Assembly: GCA_037447605.1 (NCBI GenBank) | Contig: CM074816.1 | Location: 573,873-637,872, forward strand | Length of the DNA stretch: 64,000 nucleotides | Direction: 5' to 3' | Origin: Zygnema circumcarinatum SAG 698-1b | Taxonomy: Eukaryota > Plantae > Zygnematophyceae | Part shown: piece by piece, positions 11,808 through 60,400 of the stretch | How the letters are laid out: each line of letters opens with the position of its first letter | Numbering within the stretch: the first letter of the stretch is position 1 | Notes under the pieces: model-generated | Databases searched by the model: none | Told to the model about the DNA's origin: nothing | Seen by the model: only the letters and a program-made list of their open reading frames with translations | Made by a program: the position numbers and the translations under genes

Positions 11808-14800
11808 ATGGAACAGGAACAAGTTGCGACAGTCAAAGCAAGGACTAAAAGAAATTCTTCAGCAGATTGCGGGTACATAGAGGATAACGAGGCCCCAGTG
11901 GTAAAGAAGCATAGGGTTGAACCTTTGGACAGCTGGCTTCATGCTTTACATGCCGTGAATCCATTTCCAAACATTCAAGTTGCTAATCCAGTTCCAGTTG
12001 ATAATGCTAAGTTGCATACCAAGGATGCTTCAATAAGTTCTGATGTGGAAGGAAACAGATGCACACCAATGAATTCTGCGTCAGAGGTACAATTCAGAAC
12101 TTTTGTGGTACGCAACTGGCCCTTTAAAAAGGAAGGATTAGTGACACCAGTGTTCAGAATCGTCGATTTTCCTAAATCACAGGAGAGAGTATCCTTAGAA
12201 TTCTCAGCAGAGCAAACCGGCTCCATTCTGACGAAGCAATGTTTTGTCGAAGAGAAGCCCTTCTTAGTTCCTCACTTAGACCTCGGTGCTGGAGACATGC
12301 CCTTGTCAGAATTCAACGAGGTGCGAGGGAATTCAGTGAGACTGGCGGAGAGAAAATTAATGTCACCAGTGTTCAGAATCATCGATTTTCCAAATCCACA
12401 AGAGAAAGTATCCTTTGAAGCCCCAGCAGAGGAAACTGGCGCCAATCCGAAGGAGCAATTCTTTACCAATGAGGATTCCCTTTCAGTTCTTAACAAAGAC
12501 TTCGATGCCGGAAGCATGCCCTTGTCCAAGGAGTTGCAAGAGAGTTCGAAGAGCTTGACGTTAATGGTAGGTCAAGCTACAACGTCTTCACCTGAGGAGC
12601 ACGGTCAGTGTAATACAACCATTGATGCACCATCGCCTGACCCCATGGATGCGAGAAAATTGACGCTGGAGGAAACACAGGTATTGACTGAGCAGAAGGG
12701 TAATAGAGATTTTGAAAAGTCTCTAATCAAGGAAGAGCAAGCTGTGAGGTCGCATTGGAACTCTGTGCAATGTGCGTCAGAACAGCGGCCTTCCAACTCC
12801 CTTGTCATTTCGCAAGTCAATCCAGATGGCAGTATTCCCTCAAAGAACAAGGTCAAGAACAATTCTTCCTCAGTTTCTGAAGAAATGCAATTGGTAGTGT
12901 TTTCGCCAAATTGTGGTAGAGAAACGCAAGAAACAACAGGGAAGGAGAAACTGCAAGATGATGATCCACTCGAGCCTTATGCAGCTGAGGAACTACGCAA
13001 GATAAGCCAAAAAGCTTCTTTGGAACATACTGATCGAGATGGCGGTCAGCAGGTCGACTCAGATATGAGGAGGACGAGGACGAGGATGCTGAAAAAGAAA
13101 GCGCGTTGTACAGCAAGCGCAGACATAGATGCGTCCTTGCTGAATGCGATTGTACCTTTTGAAGGCCAAGTAGGTTACGCCTTGGCTGAAATGGTCGATA
13201 TGAACAATATTGAGGCAATGGGTGCCGAAAACTTTGATGAGGAGGAATTGAAAGCGATTGTTGCTGTACAACGCGCTTTAAGAGAGTATGCAGCTCTACG
13301 GAGGCACATAATGCAGGAAGAAGGAGGCGTTGGTGCGAGCAGATCGTACTTGGAAGCAGCAAGCTTGATGCGGAGGAATATGCGAACTGTAAATAATGAT
13401 GCGAGCGGAAATCCACTGATTATCATCGGCAAAGTTCCAGGTACTCGAACTTGGCTGATCTCGTTCTCAAAGTTCGTGAGTTTTTGAGAGGTGTGGTGAT
13501 GCTTTCTATGTGCACACAGTTGTCCGCACAGAGTTGCTATTAAGGCCAGGTAGCTCTTGTGTAATTGCGATCAGTAGGGGGGTTAATCAACCCCTTAGCA
13601 ACAATTGCAGTTTCGTCCTTTTAGCCTTTCGTCCTTGCTCATTCAAATACATAGAGAGAGTCTTCTGTTTGTACAAGGTTTTGCTTTTAGCATTCTTGTG
13701 CCTTAGGCTTTGTGAGCGATTGGATCATTCGCCTTTAATGGGCCTTTGTGGGACTATCCTATTCTTTTCTATCTTTTAGTTTTCGTCATCTTGAATATTT
13801 GGTGGCGTTGACAGGTGTGCCTGTTGGCCAGCAGTTCTATTATCGGCAAGAGCTTTTGATAGTTGGCCTTCATCGACTGTTGCAGGCGGGAATCGACTAT
13901 ATTTCACCAAGCAAGAATAAGTATAAAAAGACCATTTCTACTGCTGTGATTGCATCAGGAGGGTATGAAGATGATCTCGACCAAGGAGAGTGGTTTGATT
14001 ACACCGGGCAAGGGGGAAACAATTACAATGGTGATAAAAAACAAAGTTGCGATCAAGAGCTAAAGCGGGGTAATCTAGGTTTGAAAAATAGTTGTGACTT
14101 AGGATTACCAGTAAGAGTGATTCGAGGAAATAAAGAGCCTAATTCTGATTCAGGAACTGTGTACACTTATGACGGGTTGTACAAAGTGGAGTCTTGGCGT
14201 GAAACCGTAGGTGGCTCTGGGCATAAAGTGTACAAGTTTCGTCTAGTGAGATTGCAGGGGCAACCCCCTCTCAGCTCCCCGACAGTGGAGTTTGTGCGCA
14301 CATCATTGAAGAGCAACTTGAAGAGTTCAGAGCGAAGAGGTGTTGTCGTGGAAGATATTTCAAACGGTTTAGAAAAAATCCCAATTTGCTGTGTTAACAC
14401 AGTTGATAATCCTCCTGTGCCACCGCCGCGATTCACGTACATCAATAAAGTCAATTATTCAGACTCGGTCGAGCTTCAACCTCATGAGGAGGGATGCAGT
14501 TGTAGGGATGATTGTGCATCAATTGTAAAATGCACCTGTGCAAGTGGAAATTCCCAAAGTTTCCCTTACACAAAGAGTGGACAGCTGGTTGAAGTGCTGC
14601 CAGCAATTTTTGAGTGTGGAACTATGTGTCGGTGTAAAAGCAACAAACAAGCTTGTCCAAATCGAGTCACACAGAATGGCATTCGGTATCGATTGGAGGT
14701 TTTCAAGACCAACTCTAAAGGGTGGGCTGTGCGTTCTTGGGATGCAATTCCTTCAGGTGAGTTAAGCTTTAGATGAGGTTTAGAACAAGCTTTAGATAAA

Positions 14801-15454
14801 CTAAACTTCGGTATGTTGTGAGCAATACGAACAAAAGTGAGGAGGATTGAAGCTGAATCTGCTGCAACTCAACATTACGATTGAGTTAATTTATGGATTC
14901 AGCAGTGTTGGGTTTTGCTCCTCATCTGCAGCTCTTTTTGGTGACATGTGTTCTTTGTTTCCCCATTCCGCCCACCCATCATTGTGACAGGTGCCTTCAT
15001 CTGTGAATATGTTGGCAAACTATACGATGATGAAGATGCTGAAGAAAGCTTGAAGGGGAGAGATGAATACCTCTTCAATCTTGACCTTGTTAGAGGCAAC
15101 CGAGATCGGTGGGGAGACGTGTCTGAGCTCTATGGGATGGCAAACGTTAACAGCACTGCGTTGCAAGACCTTGAGGAAGCCAAGTTCTGTTTGGATGCCA
15201 AAGATACTGGTAATGTTGCAAGGTTCATGAACCACAGCTGTCAGCCTAATATTGTGGTGCAGTGCGTTTTTCATGACCATCATGATATGCGACTGCCACA
15301 TATCGCGTTCTTTGCAGCAGAGAATATTGCGCCTTTGAGGGAACTAACTTATGATTACAACTATACAATCGGGTCTGTGTTCGATTCTGAGGGGAATGTC
15401 AACCATTTGGCATGTCGGTGTGGGGCGATCAAGTGCCGAAGATGGATGTACTAA
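11808..15454 (+). CDS. SUVH: SUVH-family histone H3K9 methyltransferase (SRA/YDG, pre-SET, SET, post-SET)
   Basis: Exons 11808-13440, 13815-14756, 14991-15454. SRA motifs GLHRLLQAGIDYI, SGGYEDDLD, YTGQGG, YTYDGLY; Cys-rich pre-SET; SET motifs GWAVRSWD, RFMNHSCQPN, ELTYDYNY; post-SET CRCGAIKCR. Subclade (SUVH4/5/6-like) not resolved. Confidence 0.95.
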
Positions 15455-21200: not shown

Positions 21201-24200
21201 AGCAGCACCAACATCGAGGTGAGTGCTCTGTGGAAATAGTGACGGTGGGTTTGCATGTCGTGGAACTTCTAGGAGGGGTAAGTCATTTATGCAGCGTAGA
21301 CATTGAAGAATGACCGAAGACTGAAAATGGCAGGAACATTTCTCTTCTATCCTTAAGAGTCGGATTGGGAAGCCTTCATCACTGTAGGTATTCACCAAAG
21401 CTATTGGCATGAAGACTTTTCCCTTCTCTGGGTCTGTAACAGGGTATTATCGTTAGTGTATGAAAGTGAGCATCATGGGGGAACCCGTCACAGTAGGCTC
21501 AACCAAGTGAAGGGGCGAACCTCTGTTATGGATGGAGGTTAATTTACTTAGAAGATTGAGTGAACGATCCTGTTCTTGTAGCTTGTGGCCACTATAAAGT
21601 GTGGGCTCGTACTATAGGCTCTCGGCAGAGCGGCTACTCATTATGCACGGGATTTGTGATCAAGGACGTTTTTTTGATGATGAAGACATCACAAAGAGAA
21701 TTTAGGTGCTGTTCGTTAGAGCATTTTACTCCTTTCTAGTTCCGTGGCCTAAAGTCAGAATGCGAATGGGGAGTTCTATCTTGTCAACTGAATCCTTACC
21801 ATGTTGCTCGCTCTTAGTTCTTCCCTTGGTGATACGGCGAGTGCATCCATGTCCGTCGTACTTCAATGTTGCTCAGAACAGCATTCACAGATGCTTTCCG
21901 TGTTCTTAGTTAAGCTTCTTCGTGCTTGACTGTCCTGACATCAGATTCTTGCATCTTATTACAGAGTGACTTGCTCAAGGAATTGGCACTGATGCGGAGA
22001 AAAGCGGCAGACGCAGAACAGGCACGAATAGCGGCAGAAAAACGCGCAGAGCAACTCATGACCGCAGCGGACCTATCTTTGCGTGAGGTGGAGGAACAGT
22101 CTAAGAAGCGGGAACTGGAAAATGCAGTGTTGATTGAAAGGGCCACTTTAGAAGCAACTCGGGCTATGGCCTCTGCTGAAGAAGCCCGCAGAATAGCAGT
22201 TTTGGAGGCCCAGAAAACTGAGCAAGCTCTCACTCAAGCTGCTATTACACGGTCAGCTTTGGAGCATGAAGTACGGAAACGTGCAGAAGCGGAACAAAAG
22301 GCTGAAAAGGAGATGGAGGCTAGACGGCAACTGAAGCATTACAGGCAGTACAGCTGGGAGGAACTCACGGTAAGTGCCTTTCAGTGTTTTACTTGGGTGG
22401 GAGTGGGAGAGAGAGAGAGTGTGAGATGAGGAGAACAAGGGGGGATGTTCCTTTATTATTATCCTTTATTTTCCTGTTTCAGCAATGTTCCTTTATTATT
22501 ATTGTTGCCATTCTTTGGTGCCTACCGCCTTACACTTCCCACTGGTCATGTCTTATTCCTTTGGTTCTTAAGAATCAGTAGCTGAACCGGTGTGGATAAT
22601 ATAAGTTGGAACAAAGTCTCTCCCCTTGTTCTATATCGGAAACAGTGTGGATCATGTAATGGTCGAGTATTTGTTGTGCCCTTTATCCTCCGACAGCTTA
22701 TAGTGGCTGCTCTGCTTACCCATCAGACGTTGTTTTTATGCAGGCTGCAACTGATAGTTTTAGCCATGATAGGAAGCTTGGGGAAGGGGGCTTTGGCACC
22801 GTGTACGCGGGCACACTACATCATACCCCAGTTGCAGTGAAGGTTTTGAAAAACACAGATGCACTGCAAGCGGCAAGCGAGTTTCAACAAGAGGTGGGTG
22901 GCTGACCACTAGCACCACTTTGCAATGCTAAAAGTAATGATCTTAGCTTGCCAATGGAGGCACCTACCTTGTGATGTTGGAGTCGAACTGCTGATTGATT
23001 TGATCTCTATATGAGAATCATAGTATTCTGTTGCTCTATTCAACCAAGGAACTAGTGAGTTGCCGCTTCCGTTGTGTCTTTTTTTCTTTAGCGCGTATCC
23101 TTATTTGCACTGCTATGCCCCTTTGGACATTTAAACGTGGAATGCTGCCTGCCCCTAGAACAAGAAAGGGGTACGCTACGTTGCATATTACCGATTCCTT
23201 GAGTGTGAGGAGCTGTGTGATCCCCTTCGTTGATTGCAAACCATCATACATGTACTCCCTTTGATAAAGTTGCATAGGCTATGGAGTGACTTCGGACCAC
23301 TTTGTCAGTCCTTTAGACAGCGGCAACCCATTTTTTTGACAATTTTGTGCTTATGCTGTCCCATTGCAGGTTGAGGTGCTCGGACAGATTCAACATCCAC
23401 ATATGGTCATGTTGCTTGGATGCTGTCCTGATAAATACTGCCTTGTTTACGAATTCATGGCTAATGGGAGTCTGGAGGAGCGTCTTCTGTGTGCAAACAA
23501 CACACCTCCCCTTCCTTGGTACATGCGGTTGCGAATTGCCGCGGAAGTTGCTTCAGCTTTGCTCATTCTGCACACAAGGCCTGTTCCTATTGTGCACCGC
23601 GATCTTAAGCCGGCGAACATTCTGCTTGACAAGAATTTTGTAGCAAAGCTGGGGGATGTGGGCTTGGCTCGCTTGATGCCGGAATTAAGCGACAATCAAA
23701 CCTACATGCGTGAGTCTGTTCCTGTAGGAACATTTGCGTATGTAGACCCCGAGTTTCAGAGAACAGGGGAGTTTGGACCGAAGTCAGATGTGTATGCTCT
23801 GGGCATAGTGCTTTTAGATCTCCTCACAGGTAGGAAACCAAACGTGTATGAGCACTTAGAGGATGCTGTTGACAATGGGGACATGGAAAAGCTCGCCAGT
23901 TTTCTGGACGAGAAAGCGGGGGATTGGCCGGTGGAGGTGGCAATGGAAGTTGCTCAGATTGCAGTGAGATGTTCTGAGATGCGTCGGAAGAAGCGGCCTG
24001 ACCTAGAGCAGGATGTTATGCCGCCGCTGGAGAAAGTTCGTGATATTGCAGCGAAGGCAGAGGACGAGGAGATGAATGTGAGGCGAGGAAGGCCCTTATT
24101 AGGGGATGCTCCCAGCAGTCTGTTCTGCCCCATAACTCAGGTGAAAAGGCTCAGTCTGATTCCACCTTTGTTGATGTGGGACCATCCTCATCTGTGCGTG

Positions 24201-24911
24201 CGACGGCGATGGGACACTGCGATTCTGCTGCTTCCATTACCGCTGCCCGCTTGACTGGAGTCCAAATAACCAGAAGTGATGAACTGTTGAATAGAAAGTG
24301 GAGAGTGGAAGGACAATGAGGGACTGTGCATGTGATGCTTGCATTTGGAGTTGGGGAAAAAACAGAAGGACAAAGATTGTATGCCTTTCTATTACTCTCG
24401 TAGGTCGTCAGGGTCCAATTCTCTCTATTCCTCGCCAGCAGTTGAACCATAGCATCTCTCGGAATGCCTCAATATTGGTCGTTAAACAGACGCTTTTCGG
24501 CTTTAGTAGTCCTACAGAGCTTCTTTTCTGGCAGCAGTTTTTCACAGCACCGTTTAACCAGTCCGTGAGAACTCTCGCTTTAGTTTCCGTCTTGGTTTCA
24601 GACGCTTCCTCACTAAGCCCGCTGACAGTTACACTGACTAAACTTCTATTATGTATTGTCCTCTGCAGGAAATCATGGTCAATCCAGTCCTGGCTGCTGA
24701 CGGGCACACCTATGAGCTGATAGCCATTCAACAATGGCTGGAAAACAATGACAGGTCGCCTATGACCAACGTGACGCTGCCAAACAAGGATTTGGTACCA
24801 AATCATGCTGTCAAGTCTCTAATCCGTGAGTGGCAAGAACGGAATTCTCGAGCCCTTCATTCTCCGAGCTTGAGTTTCAGCTTGAGCATGAGCAAAGGTA
24901 GGTCCAAGTAA
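18270..24911 (+). CDS. USP-like N-terminal domain / coiled-coil / Ser-Thr kinase / U-box protein (PUB33/34/35/51/52-type, RLCK-IXb)
   Basis: Exons 18270-18423, 18913-19022, 19393-19514, 19643-19941, 20428-21218, 21965-22369, 22744-22893, 23370-24140, 24669-24911 with consistent phases. USP-like VVVAVN...AVRWAL...LIFLHV; kinase LGEGGFGTVY, VAVKVL, HRDLKPANILL, DVGLAR; U-box FCPITQEIMVNPVLAADGHTYE...PNHAVKSLIREW. Confidence 0.93.
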
Positions 24912-27269: not shown

Positions 27270-27881
27270 TCATCCTCGGCTCTTCAACTCCGCCAGGCGC
27301 CGCGTCAGGTCGTCTTCTGCACTCGCCTCGACCTCCTTCGCAGGGAGCGCCTGGTTGGCTGCTGCAGGCAATCCAATGGAGACTTCCAAGCCATGCTCGT
27401 CTGCCACTTGCTGCATGAGAGAGTTGACATCGTCTTCAGGAGTAGAGAGAGCAGTGCTGCCCTGCATGGCATTCTCAACAAACTCCGACTGCACCTCCAT
27501 GTTAACAAACTGCTTCTCAAAGGTGTCCATGGTCTCTGAAATTTTCTGCAGGTTGTTGGACGCGAGTGCCGTATCCAGGGCCTTCACTATGCTCGCCATT
27601 GACTTGTTGATAATATTCATCTTTGCCTGTGTGTCAAGACGAGAAACGACTGCGTCCAGCCGAGAAGAAAGTCGCAAATAATTCAACTGCTCAGTCCTCT
27701 TTCTAATGGCATTTTGAGCATAGATTCGCGCTCCGTCCATGTTTCCCTTCTCGATCGCCTTCTTCACCTTCAGCTTCTCCTCCTTCTCCTCTTTCTCGCA
27801 TTTCTTCGATTGTCGCACCAGCGTCTTTGAAGTGAACTTCAGCTGAAAAATTTGGTCCAGGAGCTTCTCCTGGTTCCCCAT
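27270..27881 (-). CDS. CHMP1: ESCRT-III accessory protein CHMP1/VPS46/DID2 (Snf7 family), 203 aa, intronless CDS
   Basis: [19 protein letters not shown]...[21 protein letters not shown]...MDTFEKQF...[11 protein letters not shown] with the C-terminal MIM motif, in one uninterrupted ORF. Confidence 0.97.
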
Positions 27882-42516: not shown

Positions 42517-45040
42517 TTAGTTTTCATTCCAATGGTCCTCATCACTATGCTCCTGAGCCCTATCCCTGTCCTTCCCATAGCTTCTGTACAGCGTGCCATA
42601 GCACATGCAGCATGCGCCAAAGGGAATGGCCATGCATGCGAACAAGCCCTTTGAGAGTGCCCGAGCCTCCACAGGGGACCCCCCTAAAGGCACAGCCTTG
42701 TCCGCCCTATAACCATACAGCTGCTCTGCAAGAATCCCCACTGCAGGAGCCGCTAAAGCAGCAACTGTCCCTTCAAAAGCACGGTCAAAAGCATAAATAG
42801 TTGTTCTCAGCTTTGGAGGAACAACCTCCGCAAACAAGGGGTTATTGGCGCAGGCTTGACACCAACTGATGACTAAACCTCCGCAGAAGAGAGTAGCTGC
42901 AAAAGGGAGCCAAAGGGATGGGTCCAGGGGTAGGGCCACCAAGAGAATGTATGAGAAGGGGATTCCAAGGAAAGCACTCAATTGGGCACACATTATGCGG
43001 CCCGAGTTTGGTCTTATTTTGGCCGCTTGGTCCCCGAGCCAACCTCCAAAGAGGGCTCCCAATGCGCAGCCGGATGAGAACAAAGCCATGAGAAACGCCG
43101 TTTGGTTGTGGCTGAACCCTGCAATGCTCCGCTCTGAACCCTAGTTACACAATAGAGCCTTGCAGTTCTCCCAGTGTCCATGCACAAAGGTACACCTCAC
43201 AACAGGCAAGCTAACTTTACACAAATATGCTTACAAGCTCCCATTGAGAAATCGTAGCCATAGTCATCGTCATCCACATCATGAACATGAACATGTTCAT
43301 GTTCAACATGCATGCATGCATGTGCATGTCTAACTTCACAACTTGGAACCACCTGAAAGCAGAGGCAGATTTGAGGCAGCCCCTTACCAACCAGCTGCAA
43401 CCACATGGTGAAGAACACCATGGCCTGCCACGGGAGGGAGCCCACCACTCCCTGCAACACAATCAGCTGAAAGGTCCGCACAGAGAGCACGGTCTGAACC
43501 CCTCCCACTGCCTCCCTCCAACTGCTTCTCCACGAGGGGGGGTGAATCCCTCCAAGCTTCGCCAACACCTCTCCCGAGCCTCTCCTGCTAACGTTCCAAG
43601 AGCAGCAAGCAGTGTCAGTTTAACTCCCAAAAGCAGAAATCTGACAAGTTTCAGAAGTGGAACTTTCAAGAAAAGTTTGCAGGAATTGGACCCTAATGCC
43701 TTTACTGGGGCGCCGCTATGCTTGCTGTTTAGGACGTGCAGTTTACAGTACAGTTTGAGCATATGCTAGTTTTTAGGGTTTGCAGGATTCCTGTTGAAGT
43801 TGACAAAGGTTTTGAGGTTTTAGAGAGGATTATTTCCAACCAACCTTGGCGGAAGACCTGCAACTCGAGGGTCGACCACGAAGGTGTGAACCATCCAGCC
43901 AATGAGAGCACTCAAAACTGCCATGCCTAAAAAGGCCATACGCCATCCGGCGATTCCCAGAACTGAGTCATATCCTGCAATATCATTGTAGGAAAGAAAG
44001 AAGACAAAATCATGGCTACAGAAGTACAATTTTTTTCAACAAACTGCAGCTGATCGAAGCTTTGCGAATGAACAGAGAAAGAGACTCAAACTGATGATGA
44101 AAAAACTCATTCAAGGGCCCAAATGGGGTTTTTCCGAAGGCCACTTCAGCCACAATTTGGCCCCTTAATTCATCGCTTATCTCTTTATTTCCCTCTTGTT
44201 TCGTAATAATGGACCAAGCCCTCCGTAGCATACATAACATGAAAGACCGCTTTCATGAAATTGAAAAGAACAAAAAAAGTGAAAAAGCACGTACCTGCAA
44301 GAATAGTGGCAGCCATGCTCCCCACAATGGCTCCCACACTCCCTGTGAGGTTGAGCCATCCAAAGGCCACTCCGCGGGAGTTTTCTGCATAGCTACAGAA
44401 CGTTCAAAATGGAACAAATGAGAGTAATGCCTGAAAGGACTCTGAACTCCACAGAACGTGAGCTTCGGAGATTCCATTACTTCCTTTATTCCGGTTTCAA
44501 GAATGTATTCCAAACGAGCGTATCATCGACCTCAAAAAAGAAACATGAAGGTGCAGATTTTGTGCTTGGCTGCGTTGGGAGCAGAAGGGAGTAGAGGTAG
44601 AAGAGGGAGAGAGAAAGAAAGAAAGCGAGAGAGAGGGAGAGAGAGAGAGAGGGGGGTGGGGGGTCACACGTGTCAGCAACGAAGGACTGCACTGCGGGCA
44701 CCACGATGGCGAGCCCAACGCCGTTGATCGCGCGCCACGTGGCGCACTGCCAGTAGCTCTGCGCGAGGCCCACCGCCGCCGTGGAGAGGCCCCAAAACAA
44801 GGTCCCGAGACCCACTACGGCCGCGCGGTCGAAATGGAGAGAGAGGAACCCCGCGAGGGGGGAGGAGAGGGCCTGCACTACCGCTCTGAACTCACTCGCA
44901 CGCACAGGAAGGGAAGGGAAGGTCAGGTTTGGTGCATACATAAATAAATACATACATACATACATACATACATACATACATACATACATACATACATACA
45001 TACATACATACATACATACATACATACATACATACATACA

Positions 45041-45074
<34 letters not shown>

Positions 45075-45992
45075 CATACATACATACATACAGACATAAT
45101 GAGATTACGGTAACTCTGCAACTGCGTTTACTAGCCATAATGAACTACAGAACTTCTATCCTACCCGGCCTTGCCCTCCTCTGGGCCTCCTTAGTTCGAG
45201 TCTCGGCATTTGTTTGTCAAGATTATTTATTTCCTTGCTCTGAATCTCGTGAGTAAACCCTCCCCCACTCCCACTCCCTTTCCCGTCCCCTCCCCCTCAC
45301 CCTCCCCCTCCCCCTCCCCCTCCCCCTCCCCCTCCCCCTCCCCCTCCCCCTCCCCCTCCCCCTCCCCCTCCCCCTCCCCCTCCCCCTCCCCCTCCCCCTC
45401 CCCCTCCCCCTCCCCCTCCCCCTCCCCCTCCCCCTCCCCCTCCCCCTCCCCCTCCCCCTCCCCCTCCCCCTCCCCCTCCCCCTCCCCCTCCCCCTCCCCC
45501 TCCCCCTCCCCCTCCCCCTCCCCCTCCCCCTCCCCCTCCCCCTCCCCCTCCCCCTCCCCCTCCCCCTCCCCCTCCCCCTCCCCCTCCCCCTCCCCCTCCC
45601 CCTCCCCCTCCCCCTCCCCCTCCCCCTCCCCCTCCCCCTCCCCCTCCCCCTCCCCCTCCCCCTCCCCCTCCCCCTCCCCCTCCCCCTCCCCCTCCCCCTC
45701 CCCCTCCCCCTCCCCCTCCCCCTCCCCCTTCCCCCTCGCCCCTTCCTCCTCCACCCTCCCCCTCCCCCTCCCCCTTCCCCTCCCCCTCTCCCTCTCCCTC
45801 TCTCTCTCCCTCCTCCCCCGGCAGGCAGCACCTAATGAAGGTGAGCCAGCCGAGCTGGCTGGGCGAGGCCCGGAAGCTCCGCCCGACCTCGCGGTACACG
45901 GCCGGCAGCAGGCCCTCGTCCGCGCGCTCCGCAATGCAGGCCAAGTTCATCAGCGCCGCTGACCGCCACGTCACCCACCCGCCCTCTGCCAT
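42517..45992 (-). CDS. Major facilitator superfamily transporter (Spinster-like plant MFS_1)
   Basis: [24 protein letters not shown]...QLGWLTFIR; [12 protein letters not shown]...[21 protein letters not shown]; RGMAFGWL; GWRMAF; [28 protein letters not shown]; [11 protein letters not shown]; [24 protein letters not shown]. Confidence 0.93.
44946..45092 (+). repeat. (TACA)n microsatellite, about 36 units, in MFS intron 1
   Basis: Read directly from the sequence. Confidence 0.95.
45297..45730 (+). repeat. (CCCCCT)n hexamer array, about 70 units, in MFS intron 1
   Basis: Read directly from the sequence; it generates the spurious poly-G, GE, GR and PS ORFs. Confidence 0.97.
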
Positions 45993-49700: not shown

Positions 49701-52221
49701 GATCAATAGCAAGTTCTGTCGGAAGGGTGAATTTTTTGCCTCTAATTTGTATTATGAGTTGGATTGGATGGCTATTCTTGCAGGTTTACATCATTGGAGG
49801 AGATGGAACTCAGCGAGGTGCGGATCTCGTTCACAAGGTCAGAGTCTGTCCCATTCGAAAAGTGGAGCTTTTGTCACCTTGACATCTGGACTCTTCAAGT
49901 TCTGAGTGGAAAGCCGGACCCTAAAGTATAATGTTTGGCGGATGAATTCCAGGAAATAATGCGGAGAGGACTGAAGGTGGCGGTAGCTGGAATTCCAAAA
50001 ACAATCGACAATGATATTGCGGTGGGTCCTACGGCGCTGTCCCTTGAGCCGCCTTCACACTCTTCAAGTCACAATCAGATAATCTGTCAGTCATACTTTT
50101 ACTTCTGAAATCATTGGAAGAAGGATGTAGGATGTATTCTGAAATGCTTTTGAAAATACTTCTTTATGTGCAGGTTATAGATAGGTCCTTCGGGTTTGAT
50201 ACAGCTGTGGAGGAGGCTCAAAGGGCTATCAATGCAGCACATGTGGAGGCGGAGAGTGTGGAGAATGGGCTCGGTCTTGTTAAGCTCATGGGCCGATATA
50301 GCGGTAAAGGCTTGGTGCTTAGGACGACCTTTTGGGGAACGCAACTTATCTGCATGAAAGAGAGAAAGCATGAACCAAGAAAAAACACTAACAAACCCAA
50401 CCAGAGAGGGCTTATACCACTGTCAGTGACAATATGTAAATGGGTTGATCAGTCGGCTTCAAGCTGTGTATACTGAGACCTGCTTCCTAACATTTTTGGT
50501 TTTTTCTCTCGTTTTCATTCAAGCGTTTTCTACTGCAATTTTATTGGGCTGTTATCTAGAGGTGGGACGATGTATGAGCTGAGCTTTGAGTTTCTATCGT
50601 GCAGGATACATTGCCATGTATGCGACTCTGGCAAGCCGCGATGTGGTGAGCCCTCAACACTCAGATTGTCACAATGCGAGTAGAAAGGGCAGCATCCTAT
50701 TGGCAATTCGAAGTCCTTACATATTGTTGAAACTAACATTGTTCTAATTAGGCGTTCCATTTGAAGGCATTCATTTGATATCGTTTTTCCTCTCCCCTTC
50801 CTGCTGCTATCTTGATCCCATCCCATACGATGTTCATGAATTCCAGCAGCCGCTCTTCTGTGAGTCCTTTGATTTAGCAGAGATACAAGGGTGTGTGTAA
50901 CTGTGCAGGACTGCTGCCTCATTCCTGAAGTGCCGTTTTATCTCGAGGGTCCGGGGGGCCTTTACGATTACATTCAGAAGCGGCTGCATGAGAATGGGCA
51001 CATGGTGCTGGTGGTGGCAGAAGGGGCTGGGCAGGACTTGGTCGCAAAAACAGTTGGGGAAGCAAGCGGGAGAGACAAATCAGGGAACCGCCTGCTTCAG
51101 GATGTGGGGCTGTGGCTATCGCATCATATCAAGGTGACAGCTCTGCAGGATGAGAACTCACTGCAGGAATTCACTTAGGGAGTAGACTTTGCTGATGAGC
51201 TTGACTTAGTCTACAATAGCTCTTAGCAATGGCTGAAGTGATAGTTACAAGCAGGAGGGTATTGGGTATGTTGGAGTCACTAGAGCCTTTCGGGTACTCG
51301 GACAATGTGACAATGCTGTTTGGCTGTGGCTGGTTTGCAGGACCACTTCACGCAAAAGCGTATGGAAATGAATCTAAAATACATTGGTATGCTGCCAACT
51401 TTTCCCTGCAAACTTTGAACTCACGTGGGGTTTGAAAATTGAGGGTGATACGCTTCAGGGTTATTCCCTGACTTTTGATGATGTTCTTTCTAGAATCTTG
51501 GAGAACCAACTTCTTAAAAAAAATAGCCGTCCGTTCTTGTTCCAGATCCAACTTATATGATTCGAGCCATCCCCAGCAACGCCTCTGACAATGTCTACTG
51601 CACTCTGCTGGCGCATAGCGCAATCCATGGAGCCATGGCGGGCTATACGGGATTCATTGTGGGTCCTGTAAATGGCCGCCATGCCTACATTCCCATCGCT
51701 GTGAGTATGCTTCTCCTATAGCTCGCGGAGTAAGTCTGCATTACCTCGAGCAGTAATGCAGATGACTATTTCCTACCAGATGTTTGCATTCTCCCTTCGA
51801 TAAGCCTCGAGTTGGGAAGCACGATGGTTTGAGTTTTGACGTCTCTGTCGGGTATATTTATTCCAATTTTAAAACATTGGGATCCTGGATGTCCTTGACT
51901 TCCTCTGCGCAGCGTGTGACGGAGACCACAAATGCGGTGAAGTTATCCGACCGCATGTGGGCACGTGTGCTCTCCTCCACCCAGCAGCCGAGCTTCCTCA
52001 CAGAAGCGGAGATCACCCAGAAGAGAGAACCTGTTGGAGCGGCAACCGGAGGCGGAAACGGCGGAGCAGTCAGCAGACCCCTTGCTGCATTGGCTCCAAA
52101 AAGCAGTTCACCTGTCCCGCTTGATGTTGCACCTCCTTCGCCTTCCCAGCCAGTGAAATCACTTTCTCCACCCAAAGATGATGCGGACGCAAACACCAGT
52201 TCGAGGCGTGCTGGGTCTTGA
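46762..52221 (+). CDS. PFK: ATP-dependent 6-phosphofructokinase (plant PFK, group A-like), about 14 exons
   Basis: [75 protein letters not shown] (GGDG indicates ATP type), [68 protein letters not shown]. Confidence 0.97.
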
Positions 52222-53290
52222 ATTGCCTGCAAGCACGGCGTCCGTACGGACCGCTGCTGTGTTCCTACCATAAGCCCTCATCCGTACACTCTGCTTCTCG
52301 AGCTCTGAAAGACCCTGTTGACCACATCCATGGATCAGGCAAGGTATGTGATGGGGCTTCCAACATTTGAAGCTGATGCTTCGTCATTGCGTTTAGCAGG
52401 AGAGACTTGGTAGAAGGAGAGATGAAGAGTGGGAGGAGAACGGCCCGACTCTCCCTTAGCCATCTTTCTAACCACCTTTGAATGGTAGGGTTAGTAGGCC
52501 TTGAAATGGCACCCCCATCCACCCTGTAGTTTTGTTGATATGTGTTCCTGAGTGTAGAAAAGCATTGCGGAGACTTTCTCTGGTGTACAGAATGGGGGGG
52601 GTGTGGGGTGCCACTTTGTGCCCTAAGGAGTGCGTGACGTAAGAATAAAGGGCACGTACGGTGGACGTGAAATTTCTACTCTAGTTGGTTGTCTGATAGG
52701 CCATCGGTTCTTGGCTGTGGCAAAGTGGGATATTCAAAATGGGGTGACGGGTTATCAGTTTCCTTGTTCGCAAAAAGAACAGAAAAAAAAAAGAAAAAGA
52801 AAAAGAAAAAAAAATCTGCCGACGGAAGAAGGTGGGTATCGATTCTAAAAAGGTGTGAAAAAAGCATTTTCCGTTTTTTCAAGGAAATTCAGTCGAATGC
52901 GCTAGCCTTCAGCTGTATTTCCTTGTGCTTTACCCCAAATTATCCGCCAAAAACACGGCGCTCGGTGAAAAACAATTCAAGAGATTCGAAGGCTCCATAG
53001 CCAATATGTTGTTGATCTACAAAAGCAGCCTGGTGGCTCAGAATCGCTACAGAATCGCTACAAGCGAACGCAGTGAGCGCCGCGCTACCGAAGGTAGTCC
53101 TTTTTGGAAATCTGCCCGGCCAGGAAGGGGTGTTTTGAAAAAAACGGGTGGAAATAACACTACCCTTCTTCTTTGTGGCACTTTTCCAAACCGGAATGGC
53201 CCAGGGAACAGAGTTTCGTGCCCACGAGTCACGGCATTTCTAGTCGACCATCATCCAATGGAATTTCGCCACGTCGTAAAAGCTATGCAT

Positions 53291-53478
53291 TAGGGGGAGT
53301 CAGACCTTGACCATCGCTTACGAAATTCCCGAATTCCATATACTAAAAGTCACTTCTTTCGTGTACGAATTCTGGATCGGGAGCCCAGCCGTACCAAAAT
53401 GCGTACCTAGCCAATGCTGAATTCGCCCGACAGGCTTACGAAATTGATTTGGCGATGGTCAAGGTCTGACTCCCCCTA
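53291..53478. mobile_element. MITE, 184 bp, with perfect 25-bp TIRs and flanking TA
   Basis: TA|GGGGGAGTCAGACCTTGACCATCGC (53293-53317) ... GCGATGGTCAAGGTCTGACTCCCCC (53452-53476)|TA; no coding capacity; internal direct repeat GCTTACGAAATT at 53316 and 53434. Confidence 0.85.
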
Positions 53479-54247
53479 TTTGGCGAGTTGTGAGTGGATG
53501 TTGCTGTACTGAAAGTCTACAGAGGGAGAAGGGCCCGACGTAGCGACCTGCGGCTTTTGTCGGCACGCTATTCGGCACGGCGGCACGAGCGTCCACGTGG
53601 GCGTCGCTCATTAGAGCACGTCACGCACAGCTCCGCCGCTCGCCGGCGCCGGCCGGCATTTTCCGCCGGTTGGTCCTGCTAGATAGTTCCCCTCTCCATG
53701 TGTGATTCCGTGGAAAATTTCAGCAAGTGATTACGTGGCGATATACATTGGACATATGTACAGTACTCGCAACGGACAAAAGCCGTACGCTTCCCGACAA
53801 CCTTGGCCGCCACTGCCGCCGCCTCCCAACAAACCGGCGGAAAAAAACCGACGGCGGCGGACCAACCGCCGAAGTGGGGCTATTTGGGTCTGCCCTCAAT
53901 CGGTTCTGCTAATACTGACGCGTGCGTGCCTCCTTCCCCTGCCCCTCCCTCTCCCTCCCTCCCTCTCGTCCTCCCTTCTTACTTTCCTCCGTCCTTTCCT
54001 CCCTCCCTCCCTCCCTCCCTCCCCTCCCTGCTCCCTCGCGCTGCTCTCTCGAGAAGTGGCTCCCACCATTTACTTCGTTTCGCTTCCCCTTGCTGGCTGG
54101 CGTCTCTCGTTTTGGCGTCTTGTGCCTTCGATTTTTAGGCAATCTTAAATTCCTTCAACAATATCCTTTTTTGAAACGAGTAGCAGAAAATATACAAGGC
54201 ATATGCTGGTCGCATCCTTTGGTATAATCGACAGACGGTAATTTTCT

Positions 54248-56631
54248 ATGCGCAGAACTACCTCGGGCAACTCCTACATCGCTCCGTTTAATTATGACGC
54301 AGGTGAGTGATAGGCAGCTCCTGCCCTTGCTAGGATGAAATGAAACGAAATCTGACTTCTGCAATTATCGAATAGCCAGCCTTGACAGAATCCGCAAATT
54401 CCGAGAAAAATATTTCCAGGAATAGCATACGATTGCGAAAATGAGTGTGCAACAAACGAGCACGTTAGAAAATTATTTCACTGATTTCTTAATTGTAGCG
54501 AGGCCCATGGATTATGTTACTATCGCATTCCTTCGATTTGTGCACAAATCGCTAAACATGGAGAGGTTCAGCTCCCCTGAGGACGGCCTGCACAAGGCAT
54601 GCAGGAATGAGGCAAGAGGGGCAAAATAGAACAGAACTGGTGAAGGATCACGGGAAGCAGGGCAGGGCTATGAAGTTAGAGAGAGGGTAAATTTGAAGGA
54701 GGAAAGGTAGTCTTTTTTAACCTCTTAAACTTTCAAGGCCTAATTCGTGAGCTTAAGAACAAGCATCCTGTTGATCCTGAAACTCTTCTATTGCATACAA
54801 TTTCTTTCCCTGCATTCGCTTGAAACCATCATCCTTTCATTACCCTTACATCATCTGCTTCCATGGCAACAAAAGTGTTTGAAGAAATATTAGCTCTGTC
54901 GAATGTGAGCGGCAAAAGTATCATTCCGTTTGCCTTTCCACGCTTAAGCCTGGCATGCGTCAAGCAATTCCTATTGCGTATAAAAGGGCAAAAAATGAGA
55001 ACTGCGCAAAAAATCACCAAATTTACAGTGGCTAATTCCTTCGTCGAGTTTTTTTTTTAATCTCTTGGTATTGTCTTTTCTCTCCTTCACCTGTCTTCCT
55101 TTTAAACACTCTCATAATCTTCCTATTTCACCTTGTCACTTGCTTTTGCTTTGCGTCAGATACCAGTCCCGACAATGGAGGATACGTGTATTACAGGATG
55201 CTGAGCAAAGCCAGCAATTCGGCGAATCTCTCAAGCCTTGCACAGGATGTGACGAATCTGTTTCCGTTTGATGTTGAGGCTCAAAATTTTCAGCCGGATG
55301 GAGGGTTTGTGCTGTCATACATCGATGTGGGATATTACAAGTGAGTGTGTTGGCATTCACCGCTGTTTGACTCTGAACAATGTACTTCGCGTGTCCATGA
55401 TATCTTCTCTATATTTCCTCCATTCCATTTATCGCCGCCATTCGAAGGTGGTCGATGTGGCGCCTCTGTGCTGCTTTGGGGATGGCAGAGGAGCAGAAGA
55501 GTGGAGCTGCATAGACCATCTTGGACTTGGTCATGCGTGCAGGGTCAACCTCATGTCTCGTTGAAATTGGTTGACACTCGAAAGCTGCAGGATCTGATTG
55601 TTGCTCACGAATTGAGTTTGTTGAAAGGCACCAATTTCTTCCTCCCAGTGCTTATCTATATTTTTGAAGATTTAGATGCTACGATGCTCGATGCAAAGCG
55701 CGGATATAGTGGCAGAACGAGTTTTATCCTTAAAGTCTTTCCACGTTTGTTAAACAGCAAAGCAGGAGTCGACGTCCATCGTATTTTTTATTCTTCCTGA
55801 GAGTTGCTGCATATGATGCGTTTTTTCGTTGTAGTGATTCTATGCAGCCCTTTTTCGTCTTTGGATTCAATGAGCAATAGCTTTATTCGGCAGCACCTTT
55901 CTGTTCATCCAAATGTGTTCTGCAGGCATGTTTGCGACTCTCTCCTTACTCTTGCATGTGTGTTTTTGGCGTTGCAGCTCTCATACAGATCTTGTGAACA
56001 CCTTCCAAGTCTGGCTGGCATGGACCTCGTCTGCGCGCTGGCCTCGGACATTTTGCTGTTTTCTCTACCCTGATGGTGGACTGCAAAAAAACAGTAAGCG
56101 ACCCTTAACTCTGAATGGCATATCTAGAAGTACCTTCGCTTTAGTTCAAGATTGAATGTTTTTGGAACTTTGAACTTCTAGAACCTCACTTTGGGAGCTG
56201 GACTCGTATTGTTTGTTTGTTTTAAAAAGTAGACAATTGAAGCCTCAGCTATAGTTCGAGCATCTGTGGCGTTCTACTATGTGGACGGCGTGTGGATGCA
56301 GCCCCAAGTCCAAATTTATTTGCATTCTTGGTCCCCCCCAGTATGCAACTCATGCAGCATTCATGAGTTGGATGCTCAGCATCCAACTGCCCTCCGGGGG
56401 TTGAAGGGATGTCCCTCATGCGCGCACAGCCCTCGCGTCCTCCGGCCCTCGCATGCAAACTTCCTCGGACCGCCCCGGCCGGAGGGCGACGAGGGCCGTT
56501 CGATTCGTCGACAGGACAAATGCGCTCCCTCCGATCCGCGACCGCTTGCAGCCTCTCACAGAATGCGACGTGGATGGGCCGTCGATTCGTCTCCGTACAC
56601 ACCCGTCAATGATGATGACGTGGCAACCTGA
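54248..56631 (+). CDS. NIDO (nidogen-like) domain-containing gene, spliced, no signal peptide; possibly truncated or decaying
   Basis: Exons 54248-54302, 55160-55340, 55978-56093 and 56248-(56631) join in frame through GT-AG introns (phases 1,2,1): YIAPFNYDADTSPDNGGYVYYRMLS...LAQDVTNLFP...NFQPDGGFVLSYIDVGYYNSHTDLVNTFQVWLAW...TFCCFLYPDGGLQKNTIVRASVAF. This matches the NIDO pattern IAPFWAD...G.VYYR...F.P...F.ATW..V.YY...NTFQ.VL....FLY..GL. Start and end are uncertain. Confidence 0.7.
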
Positions 56632-57408
56632 CCCAACGCCACATCATCGTGCGTGCAGGAAGAACTGTGCCACGTGGCAAGCAGTGTAGGCCGTGGTGTT
56701 GAATCTGCCACGTGTCCGTACGGGTGTACACGTTTTTCTGATTTAAATTTATTATTATTATTATAATTATAATTTTCCTCAGTCAGTTTTCTCTTCATGA
56801 AATTATTTCATTCTCTGCTCTTCATTCTGTGGGAGAAGTGAGAGGGGAAAGAGGAAGGGGAGAAGTGGGAGAGAGAGGCGAGAGGGAACGGGAGGGGGGT
56901 GGATAGAAGAATGAGAAAATGGGAGGTGAGGGAAGGAGAGCGGGAGAGGAGGGGGAGTGAAAGGAGAAGGGGAAGGAGCGCATTGTTCGGAGAAGCGAGA
57001 GGAGAAAAGGAGAGTGGGAGGGGTGGAGAAAGGGAGGGAGGAGACGAAAAGTGGTCCGGAAAGGGGATGGGGATAGGGAGAGATGGATGGGAGGGAAGGG
57101 GGAAATTGAGGGAGTATCGGAGAGGGAGGGAGGGATGGGGCCTGTACTGTGTCAGAGCAGGGTGATACCTCCCTCATCAAAGAATCCTTTGATTTATGTT
57201 TCTTTTAGAAGTGCGAATTGCAACTGGGGGAATTCCTGTTATATTTTGCACAATGCAGCTGAATTTTCATGTTGCAGCTATTTTGTAACTTGGAGTTGGG
57301 TGTTTTACTTTTTTCGGTGTTGTGTTTTATTTTTTTTCAGCATTTGACTCGCTTCTTTTTAAAAGGCTTCTACGGAAGGTTCCATGACCATTCTCAGTTT
57401 CAGTCATT

Positions 57409-60400
57409 ATGCAGAAATATTCGATTCTTGCGTATTGTTTGTTTATTTGAACTTCCTGATTCTCGATTTTTGCTTGTGCGGAGTTAAACGTGGGCCATTT
57501 GCACATTATAGTGGCAGAGCAGAAAAAAGTTCTTCTTTCCTCCCTCCCCTTCCGCCGCCCACTTCCCATTTTTTTCGTCCTTCTCCCACCCTGTCTTCCC
57601 TTCCTCGCTTGCCCTATCCCTCTCCTCTTCATTCCTCGTCGCTAACCCTCCTACTCTTCCTCCTCTTCCCAATCGTCTCTCTCCTCTCTCGTCTACCTTC
57701 CTTTCTTTCGTTACTCTTTCCTGCTCCTTCTGCCTGATCATACCTCGTTGCTCTTTTTCCTCTCGTGCTTTCGTCCCCTCCCCCTTCCCCGCTCTCCATT
57801 TTTCTCTGCCATTTGTCTCCTGCCTCCTTTTTCTGCTTCTTCTGTGCTTCTTCTCCTTACGTTTCCCTTCCCACCTAATCCAGCATGCTCTTTCCTTTCT
57901 CAATCCTCCTCTCCCCTGTCTGCCTTCTCCCTACTCCCTCCTGCCTGCTCTCATGCACTCTCCCTGCTGCATAATGTTTTCTACCTTCTGAATCCATCCT
58001 TTTATTTGCTTTTTGCTCATGTCTCACGTTTCCCTCCTCCTTCCTTTCACATTCCCCCCACTTTCCACCCGCCCTCCTACGCATCCTTCTCCCTCCCTCC
58101 TTTTTTCCTCCTGTTTCAGTTTCCCCTCGTTCCTCCTATCCTCTCTCCTTCCTTGACTCTCTCTCCTACTTCCCTCACTCCCCTCTCCTCTTCTCCCTTG
58201 TCTCCCCTTTGCCCTCCTGTTTCTCGCGTCTCTCTCTCCGCCCACCTCCGTCCTCCCTCCTTCTGCCTGCCTCCTCCCTCTCACATGTCCTTTCTGCTCC
58301 TTCCTCCCACTAAACTCTTTCATCCGGTCTCCTCCTTCCTCATATTGTCCCTCGTCCCTCCCACTTTCTGTTCACTTTCTCCTGTTCCGTCTTCCTCCCG
58401 CCTCTCCTGCCTCCGCCTTCTTCCTTCTCCTTCTCTCTGCCTTTCTCCTTTTCTTCACATTTTCCGGATACTCTCCCCTTCGTTTCTCATTCATCTATAG
58501 CTTTTTCTGCATTTGCTTTTTTGATCGTCTTTGTGGCCTCATTTCTTGCATGTTTTGTGCAGGCGAGGCCGAGTTGTGCCTTCAGCGATTGCTCTGCTCG
58601 CTTTGTTTTGTTTTGCTTCTTTCAAGAGAGCTGTCTGCGCAGTGAAGATCAACTCGACTCAAGCTGGTAAAGTCCTTTTCCCCTCTTTTTCCGCAGTTTC
58701 TACATCTTTCTCGACAGCAGGTTCAGCTTTACGTGCTCGTTTCGTTCCGAAAGAGTCAGTTATCACAGACGTTTTGAAGTCAGCATCGATGCATAACTCA
58801 CAGACTTCACATGACTTATTCGTTTCCCTTTCCTTTGGGGAAGAAGTGTGTGTAGAATAATATGAATGAAACACTTCTCTGGCTTTTCTTGGAAGTTCAG
58901 CTTTTGTGAATGATTTTGCTGCAGTCTCTACCCTGTAGCGAGTCTGCAGATTTACCTTAGTCTTTTGCAGAACTTAAAGTGATTGGGATAAATAATGCGG
59001 CTATGGACAGTCTGCAAAGATGGTTTCTCTCTGTTTCAGTCCAGTGTTTCATTGTGTTTCCTTGAGAAAAAAAACACATTTCTTTCTCCGGGTTAAAAAG
59101 AGTGTGGATAAACACCTAGGATGCTATGATTTGCAGTATCACCTGAGTCAAGTGATGAAGAAGTTAATGCACGTCTTTATGATTTTTGCGTATTCGTATC
59201 TGCATTACTTTGATTGAAGTTTGTGATGTACATCACTGGTCTTATATCTCCTGATCTTGATGGTGAACTTATAGTTTTCCCTGTGGCATGCATTCCTATT
59301 GTCAAGATATAGGAAAGTAGAGTACGAAGGACTGGCTTCAGAGGTATGAGAGCTATTGCTGCATGTGGTTTGCTTGAATCTTAAAGAAGCTTCCTGGTAT
59401 TGATTCGTTGTGAAAATCTTTGCATTGTCAGGGCTAGGGCAGCGATTCATAGTGGTCAAGCAACTTCGGGAAATTTCAAATGCCCCTTCTTCACTGAGTC
59501 TTTTGGAAATGTTTGCAGCTGTTTTACTCGACGTGGCTGAGAAACTGCACTCCGTCAACAACGTATTCTTCAAGTCGTGGAACGTATCCAATGACTGCAG
59601 CAAGTGGATTGGCGTGCAGTGCGATGAGCTTGGGAACGTGATTACATTGTGAGTATTCGTAACTTGCGAATGATGAACTATTTCCGAAGACTCAGCTTTT
59701 GCGTCTCCCAGTTGGTTTAGCATTTGGTTGAATAATGAATTTTTCGCCATACAGTCGTGAAAGCGTTTAGTGAATGTGGAGGCTCAGTCAGGAACGAGGT
59801 CCAGTTCAGTAACGGAGCAGAAATAATCAGGAGAAACCTTGCTGCGCTCATTTGGGTCGTCTTGTTTGGAAAGCTCGGAATTGGTTTCAATAGTTCTGAG
59901 GGTTTGTGTATCTCTCTATAACGTCGCCTTATTATCTAGTGACATGTCTGCAGTCAAAGACTGAGATTTCTGCAGAAGAATCACGCACGGACAGACAAGG
60001 GGGACTTTCTTTGCTGCAAGAACGCAAATTTGGGTTGCAGCACTGATTCATATAGACTAGGTTCAGCAATTAGAGGCCTGACTATGTTCTTAACCAGTGT
60101 TTCGGTCCTGGCATCTTGCGATTTTTACTCACTTGTGAATTCCTCCACAACCAAGAGTATGCTGCATGTGTGTTGCATTTTGAGGCCAAGAAGCTACTTT
60201 GTTCAAATGTTGTTGTTTTCTAGTTCGATTGTAGAAAAAAGTTGAACTACGAAAGTAATCAGTCTTGCCACCTGTCTTCACCCCCTGCAGGGTCATCACT
60301 CCCATCGATGTCACTCATCCAAACGGCACTGTCCTCATAAAAGCAACCGTTCCCACAGGTGCGGACGGACGAGTCATTCCCGTGGCTGACTTTTTCGGAA

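Follow-up and report, generated by a model that had tools for sequence, protein, structure and literature searches.

A truncated, probably decaying NIDO fragment upstream of an LRR gene in the alga Zygnema circumcarinatum

The stretch of DNA analysed here, hereafter the window, comprises 64,000 nucleotides of Zygnema circumcarinatum SAG 698-1b and holds on its + strand part of a NIDO domain, split over three small exons and possibly the first 14 codons of a fourth. The fragment sits in a spacer of 7 kb that separates a phosphofructokinase (PFK) gene from an LRR gene. Exons 2 and 3 are genuinely homologous to NIDO, and the fragment is probably an incomplete, decaying and minor member of a known domain family. 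We infer a duplication origin and a loss of function, and we give a probability of roughly 0.55 to the reading that the exons are the truncated NIDO head left by a tandem duplication of a NIDO-headed LRR gene and are now decaying. The features on which the argument draws are as follows, with positions counted from the first letter of the window.

54248 to 54302, + strand: exon 1, with start ATG at 54248, encoding 20 aa that end in SYIAPFNYDA; donor CAG|GTGAGT
54256, + strand: alternative start of exon 1, behind an acceptor AG at 54254–54255, phase 2
54303 to 55159, + strand: intron 1, 857 nt, CAG|GTGAGT...GCGTCAG|, with a pyrimidine-rich acceptor
55160 to 55340, + strand: exon 2, the central NIDO part, 59 aa, with a Pfam NIDO match
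55341 to 55977, + strand: intron 2, 637 nt, CAA|GTGAGT...GTTGCAG|, with a pyrimidine-rich acceptor
55978 to 56093, + strand: exon 3, 38 aa, with blocks NTFQVWLAW and FLYPDGGLQ and a Pfam NIDO match; donor ACA|GTAAGC, phase 1
56094 to 56248, + strand: intron 3, 155 nt, ACA|GTAAGC...GCCTCAG|, whose acceptor GTAGACAATTGAAGCCTCAG| has a poor pyrimidine tract
56249 to 56292, + strand: start of exon 4, first 14 codons IVRASVAFYYVDG, possibly the last recognisable NIDO stretch, by eye only
56293 to 56631, + strand: open-frame tail of exon 4, without homology, overlapping the ACGTG cluster; probably non-coding
56568 to 56776, no strand assigned: promoter-like block, 7 ACGTG/CACGT (G-box/ABRE-like) cores within 300 nt, then AT-rich at 56742–56776
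58913 to 58948, + strand: 36 nt that match the end of exon 3 with 75% identity, FCCSLYPVASLQ versus FCCFLYPDGGLQ
59519 to 59648, + strand: LRRNT exon, the first recognisable exon of the LRR gene (LRRNT_2, 20.2 bits, E 7e-4); acceptor TTTGCAG|CT, phase 1

The four pieces keep a single reading frame of 55 + 181 + 116 + 383 = 735 nt, from ATG 54248 to TGA 56629–56631, which gives a modelled product of 244 aa. Every donor and all but one of the three acceptors are strong splice sites, and exons 1–3 contain no stops and no frameshifts. An in-frame TAA at 54239–54241, 9 nt 5′ of the sole ATG, closes a 12-codon upstream ORF; this stop interrupts the frame, and the only possible starts of coding are ATG 54248 and the acceptor AG 54254–54255. 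The first-pass annotation, made from the letters alone, had opened the frame at 54149, a start that the same TAA shuts off. Its four exons joined in frame through canonical introns are borne out by the three GT–AG introns and the 735-nt frame, with the correction that exon 4 begins at 56249 and not at 56248, and the peptide blocks that it quoted are found in the translated exons.

NIDO (PF06119/SM00539) occurs in animal extracellular proteins, among them nidogen, alpha-tectorin, mucin-4 and SNED1. The Pfam profile is 186 positions long and has a gathering score of 25 bits. Searched exon by exon against 24,736 families, exon 2 matched NIDO at 13.2 bits (E 0.09, profile positions 43–92) and exon 3 at 21.7 bits (E 2.3e-4, positions 99–126); each score lies below the gathering score, and the plain sum of these separate searches is 34.9. 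The two exons match one and the same family in collinear order and correctly spaced, and an alignment with a Strongylocentrotus purpuratus NIDO protein agrees, which upholds the NIDO-like character claimed at first pass, as a weak match. A further 58 stop-free pieces from both strands of 51.5–64 kb produced no NIDO match in Pfam (E ≤ 10 or ≤ 1), nor did exon 1 or exon 4 at E ≤ 10. For these two the likeness is by eye only: IAPFNYDA in exon 1 resembles the APFwaD block and aligns with ITPYWAD of the S. purpuratus protein, and RASVAFYYVDG in exon 4 resembles the a.vGF..g block.

Searches outside Pfam point the same way for exon 2. With phmmer, four of 1.84 billion representative proteins matched it at E < 1e-3, and the sole true relative among them is a 382-aa, NIDO-only protein of S. 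purpuratus that is 38% identical over exon 2 (E 7e-4) and itself scores 149 bits against Pfam NIDO. Two higher-scoring matches were rejected as NIDO, being tandem-repeat proteins that have only a 17-residue motif in common with the exon, and the fourth, a bacterial Ig-like/FG-GAP protein, was not counted as a true relative. In the ESM Atlas, a language-model search, NIDO clusters made up 25 of the 30 nearest to exon 2 (score 0.91, 170 shared features), with a low recognition value; exon 3 returned no Atlas matches. A metagenome scan with exon 2 gave no relative, and exons 2 and 3, searched against the sequences of the PDB, matched no NIDO structure.

Compared with animal NIDO domains, including that of the sea-urchin protein XP_030855017, the algal exons keep the blocks APF..D, G.VYYR, the strand ending in GYY, NTFQ..L and F.YP..G.Q in order and spacing. 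FLYPDGGLQ of exon 3 may be the counterpart of the nidogen segment FLYPEDGLQ, and two positions that are presumably Trp in many NIDO domains are S-Y and K in the algal copy. The differences from the animal proteins are that the algal copy covers only ~55% of the domain, has neither a leader nor a partner domain in the same open frame, and belongs to a green alga.

The truncation affects both ends. Exons 1–3 together with the ~14 codons of exon 4 cover profile positions ~33–140 of 186, and the first ~32 and last ~45 positions were not found between the neighbouring genes. Profile positions 1–42 and 127–186 found no match in Pfam among 30 flanking + strand pieces, of which 20 are all those of at least 34 aa from 52221 to exon 1 and 10 come from 56.0–56.9 kb; 10 further + strand pieces at 58.3–59.6 kb likewise gave no NIDO match. 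This Pfam scan omitted six frames of the low-complexity tracts at 56.84–57.99 and 57.98–58.31 kb (eight ranges, spanning 56.84–58.64 kb). A pattern search of the three + frames over 52222–54260 and 56094–59520 found no N-terminal motif of the NGxxSF type and neither of the C-terminal motifs GxWxFR and SNxGxPG; its only match was a loose TNG-type motif at 58320, inside a low-complexity frame. Short N-terminal exons could evade Pfam, as exon 1 does. The modelled N-terminus, MRRTTSGNSY..., carries no hydrophobic leader, and the upstream sequence offers no hydrophobic leader exon that starts with ATG and ends in a donor of compatible phase; with the stop 9 nt before the ATG, these observations confirm the lack of a signal peptide reported earlier.

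Downstream, the homology fades after YYVDG, as had been suspected: exon 4 is NIDO-like for ~14 codons and not beyond. The remaining 113-codon tail has a GC content of 0.60, compared with 0.47–0.52 in exons 1–3, and matches no family in Pfam; GC by codon position did not discriminate coding from non-coding sequence here. An intact gene is contradicted by the two missing domain ends and by this tail without homology, which overlaps the promoter-like block. The caveat that the first-pass annotation attached to its own gene, that the copy could be a fragment of a larger family, has turned out to be the best reading.

The cluster of ACGTG/CACGT cores at 56568–56776 is the third densest in the window, the two denser ones lying at ~17.7 kb and, ahead of the PFK gene, at 45.9–46.1 kb. 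Its cores are followed downstream by the AT-rich stretch and then by GA-rich and CT-rich tracts, a succession that looks like promoter and 5′UTR-like DNA, and the block may serve the LRR gene as a stress-responsive promoter. Long tracts border the NIDO fragment (53920–54040, 56840–57160 and 57500–58600), CT-rich except for a GA-rich one in the middle. They yield long, stop-free and meaningless Ser/Leu/Pro/Phe frames that could pass for proline-rich linkers. Such a linker was considered for the tract at 57.5–58.6 kb and rejected, since its stop-free frames abound in Ser, Leu and Phe, the residues that CT-rich non-coding DNA would yield on translation.

On the upstream side of the fragment, the ATP-dependent phosphofructokinase gene, also on the + strand, ends at 52221 (PDB 2hig, E 7e-10). 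On the downstream side, the LRR gene begins 3.2 kb after the NIDO fragment, and its exons, each encoding one plant-type LRR of 24 residues, run from 59519 to the end of the window at 64 kb and probably continue beyond it, where any EGF, papain and LysM parts would lie. A NIDO module (54.25–56.3 kb) is in this way followed by an LRR module (59519 to 64 kb) on one strand. The LRRNT exon needs upstream exons, because it starts at a phase-1 acceptor; the 5′ exons and leader peptide of the LRR gene were not found upstream of 59519, where there is one weak candidate for a leader exon, at 57384–57489. The 36-nt stretch at 58913–58948 (blastn E 0.007 and tblastn E 0.002, in a search space of ~2.7 kb) has no surrounding open frame and may be either a relic of a second copy or a chance similarity. 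No lectin remnants were found among the pieces scanned at 58.3–59.6 kb, and the minus strand around the fragment gave no family match. A blastn comparison of 52.2–59.4 kb with the window found no repeated element around the fragment, and transposon capture is not supported, because no repeat family surrounds it.

In the reading that we favour, an LRR gene headed by NIDO would have been duplicated in tandem, leaving a NIDO head without its N-terminal strands, its C-terminal third and its leader. This head would now lie upstream of the present promoter of the LRR copy. The remnant would be decaying, or at most be carried as a leader that does not fold, and the locus would contain no free-standing NIDO gene. 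Any decay would be recent, because the splice sites are intact and exons 1–3 are free of stops.

The same arrangement lends itself to a second reading, possible and on balance unlikely, in which exons 1–3 would be a working 5′ module of the LRR transcript, spliced in frame to the LRRNT exon, with further 5′ exons so short or diverged that they went undetected. The fragment, with intact splice sites, shares its strand with the LRR gene, the LRRNT exon requires exons upstream, and the exon 3 donor and LRRNT acceptor, both of phase 1, are compatible in frame. Compatibility of phase is, however, a 1-in-3 event, the product would contain only the middle of NIDO and no leader, and the promoter-like G-box cluster with its AT-rich block separates the NIDO exons from the LRR gene. 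That the partial NIDO exons are expressed and joined by phase-1 splicing to the LRR gene, as domain shuffling in progress, is a rather doubtful proposition. If true, a secreted algal LRR(-papain-LysM) protein would be gaining or losing a metazoan-type matrix module via symmetric phase-1 introns.

Less probable still, and in our judgement quite improbable, is a free-standing small gene of 244 aa, running from ATG 54248 to TGA 56631, whose product would be intracellular or unconventionally secreted and would adopt a partial NIDO fold. The four pieces in frame and their GT–AG introns suit such a gene, as does the CT-rich tract at 53920–54040, of a kind seen ahead of genes, 5′ of the ATG. Against it, a NIDO domain without its two ends is not likely to fold, ahead of the ATG come a 12-codon upstream ORF and a stop, intron 3 ends in a weak acceptor, and the 113-codon tail is promoter-like and without homology. 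Nor was there a similar protein among 1.8 billion representatives, a set from which the species' own proteins are absent; the lack of a matching protein says little about expression, because neither the proteins nor the transcripts of this species are in the collections. Exact records were sought for the CHMP1 of the window, for the 80-aa ORF over exon 3 and for an MFS exon, and there is none for any of the three. Chance similarity in non-coding DNA is very improbable: single-exon scores under the gathering score, the low Atlas recognition value and the lack of Atlas matches to exon 3 are what would speak for it, but two independent pieces, correctly ordered and bordered by strong splice sites, hit the same 1 of 24,736 families, the 58 control pieces had no such match, and phmmer and the ESM Atlas give independent support.

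Elsewhere in the window, an intronless CHMP1 gene (Snf7 family, 27273–27881, minus strand) has its best matches in Logan assemblies (94% and 92%), Mesotaenium endlicherianum (89%), Spirogloea (84%) and Closterium (82%). These identities of 82–94% agree with the streptophyte host proposed from the letters alone and place it with the Zygnematophyceae. Large exons at 13748–15454 and 23364–24254 resemble, in the ORF list only, an SRA/pre-SET/SET histone methyltransferase of the SUVH type and a protein kinase. Two long microsatellite-like tracts occupy 44486–45962, with an MFS-like gene on one side and the PFK gene on the other: (YVCM)n on the minus strand at ~44.5–45.1 kb and an (SP)n/(GE)n/(G)n hexamer repeat at 45.2–45.9 kb. 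Beyond the PFK gene, a perfect 27-nt inverted repeat with arms at 53291–53317 and 53452–53478, 134 nt apart, looks like a MITE of 188 bp; the window contains no second copy of this element (53291–53478).

The presence of NIDO in this alga has a precedent. In filamentous Zygnema, according to Feng et al. (2024, Nat Genet, PMC11096116), NIDO is one of the top families, whereas three unicellular Zygnematophyceae and the land plants lack it. The authors prefer loss in the unicellular relatives to gain, on the ground that algae outside Phragmoplastophyta have such families too, and NIDO was probably retained vertically (PMC11096116). Their Zygnema NIDO proteins come from the algal class of our fragment and share its domain family; they differ in that only a domain count is given, with no locus or architecture, and in that the copy here is truncated. 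Apart from that study, we found no paper linking NIDO with streptophyte algae. The proposal of a little-described family is not supported, the family being on record already, and of the two origins suggested with it, horizontal transfer or ancient retention, the published analysis speaks against recent transfer and for vertical retention (PMC11096116). The first-pass annotation would have been refuted by NIDO proteins common and vertically inherited in green plants, and the published listing goes part of the way there.

On its own the fragment matters little. It would serve as one data point for a NIDO family that turns over by local duplication and decay, with NIDO exons that adjoin LRR genes, and as such it may help to reconstruct how the modular surface proteins of these algae were assembled.
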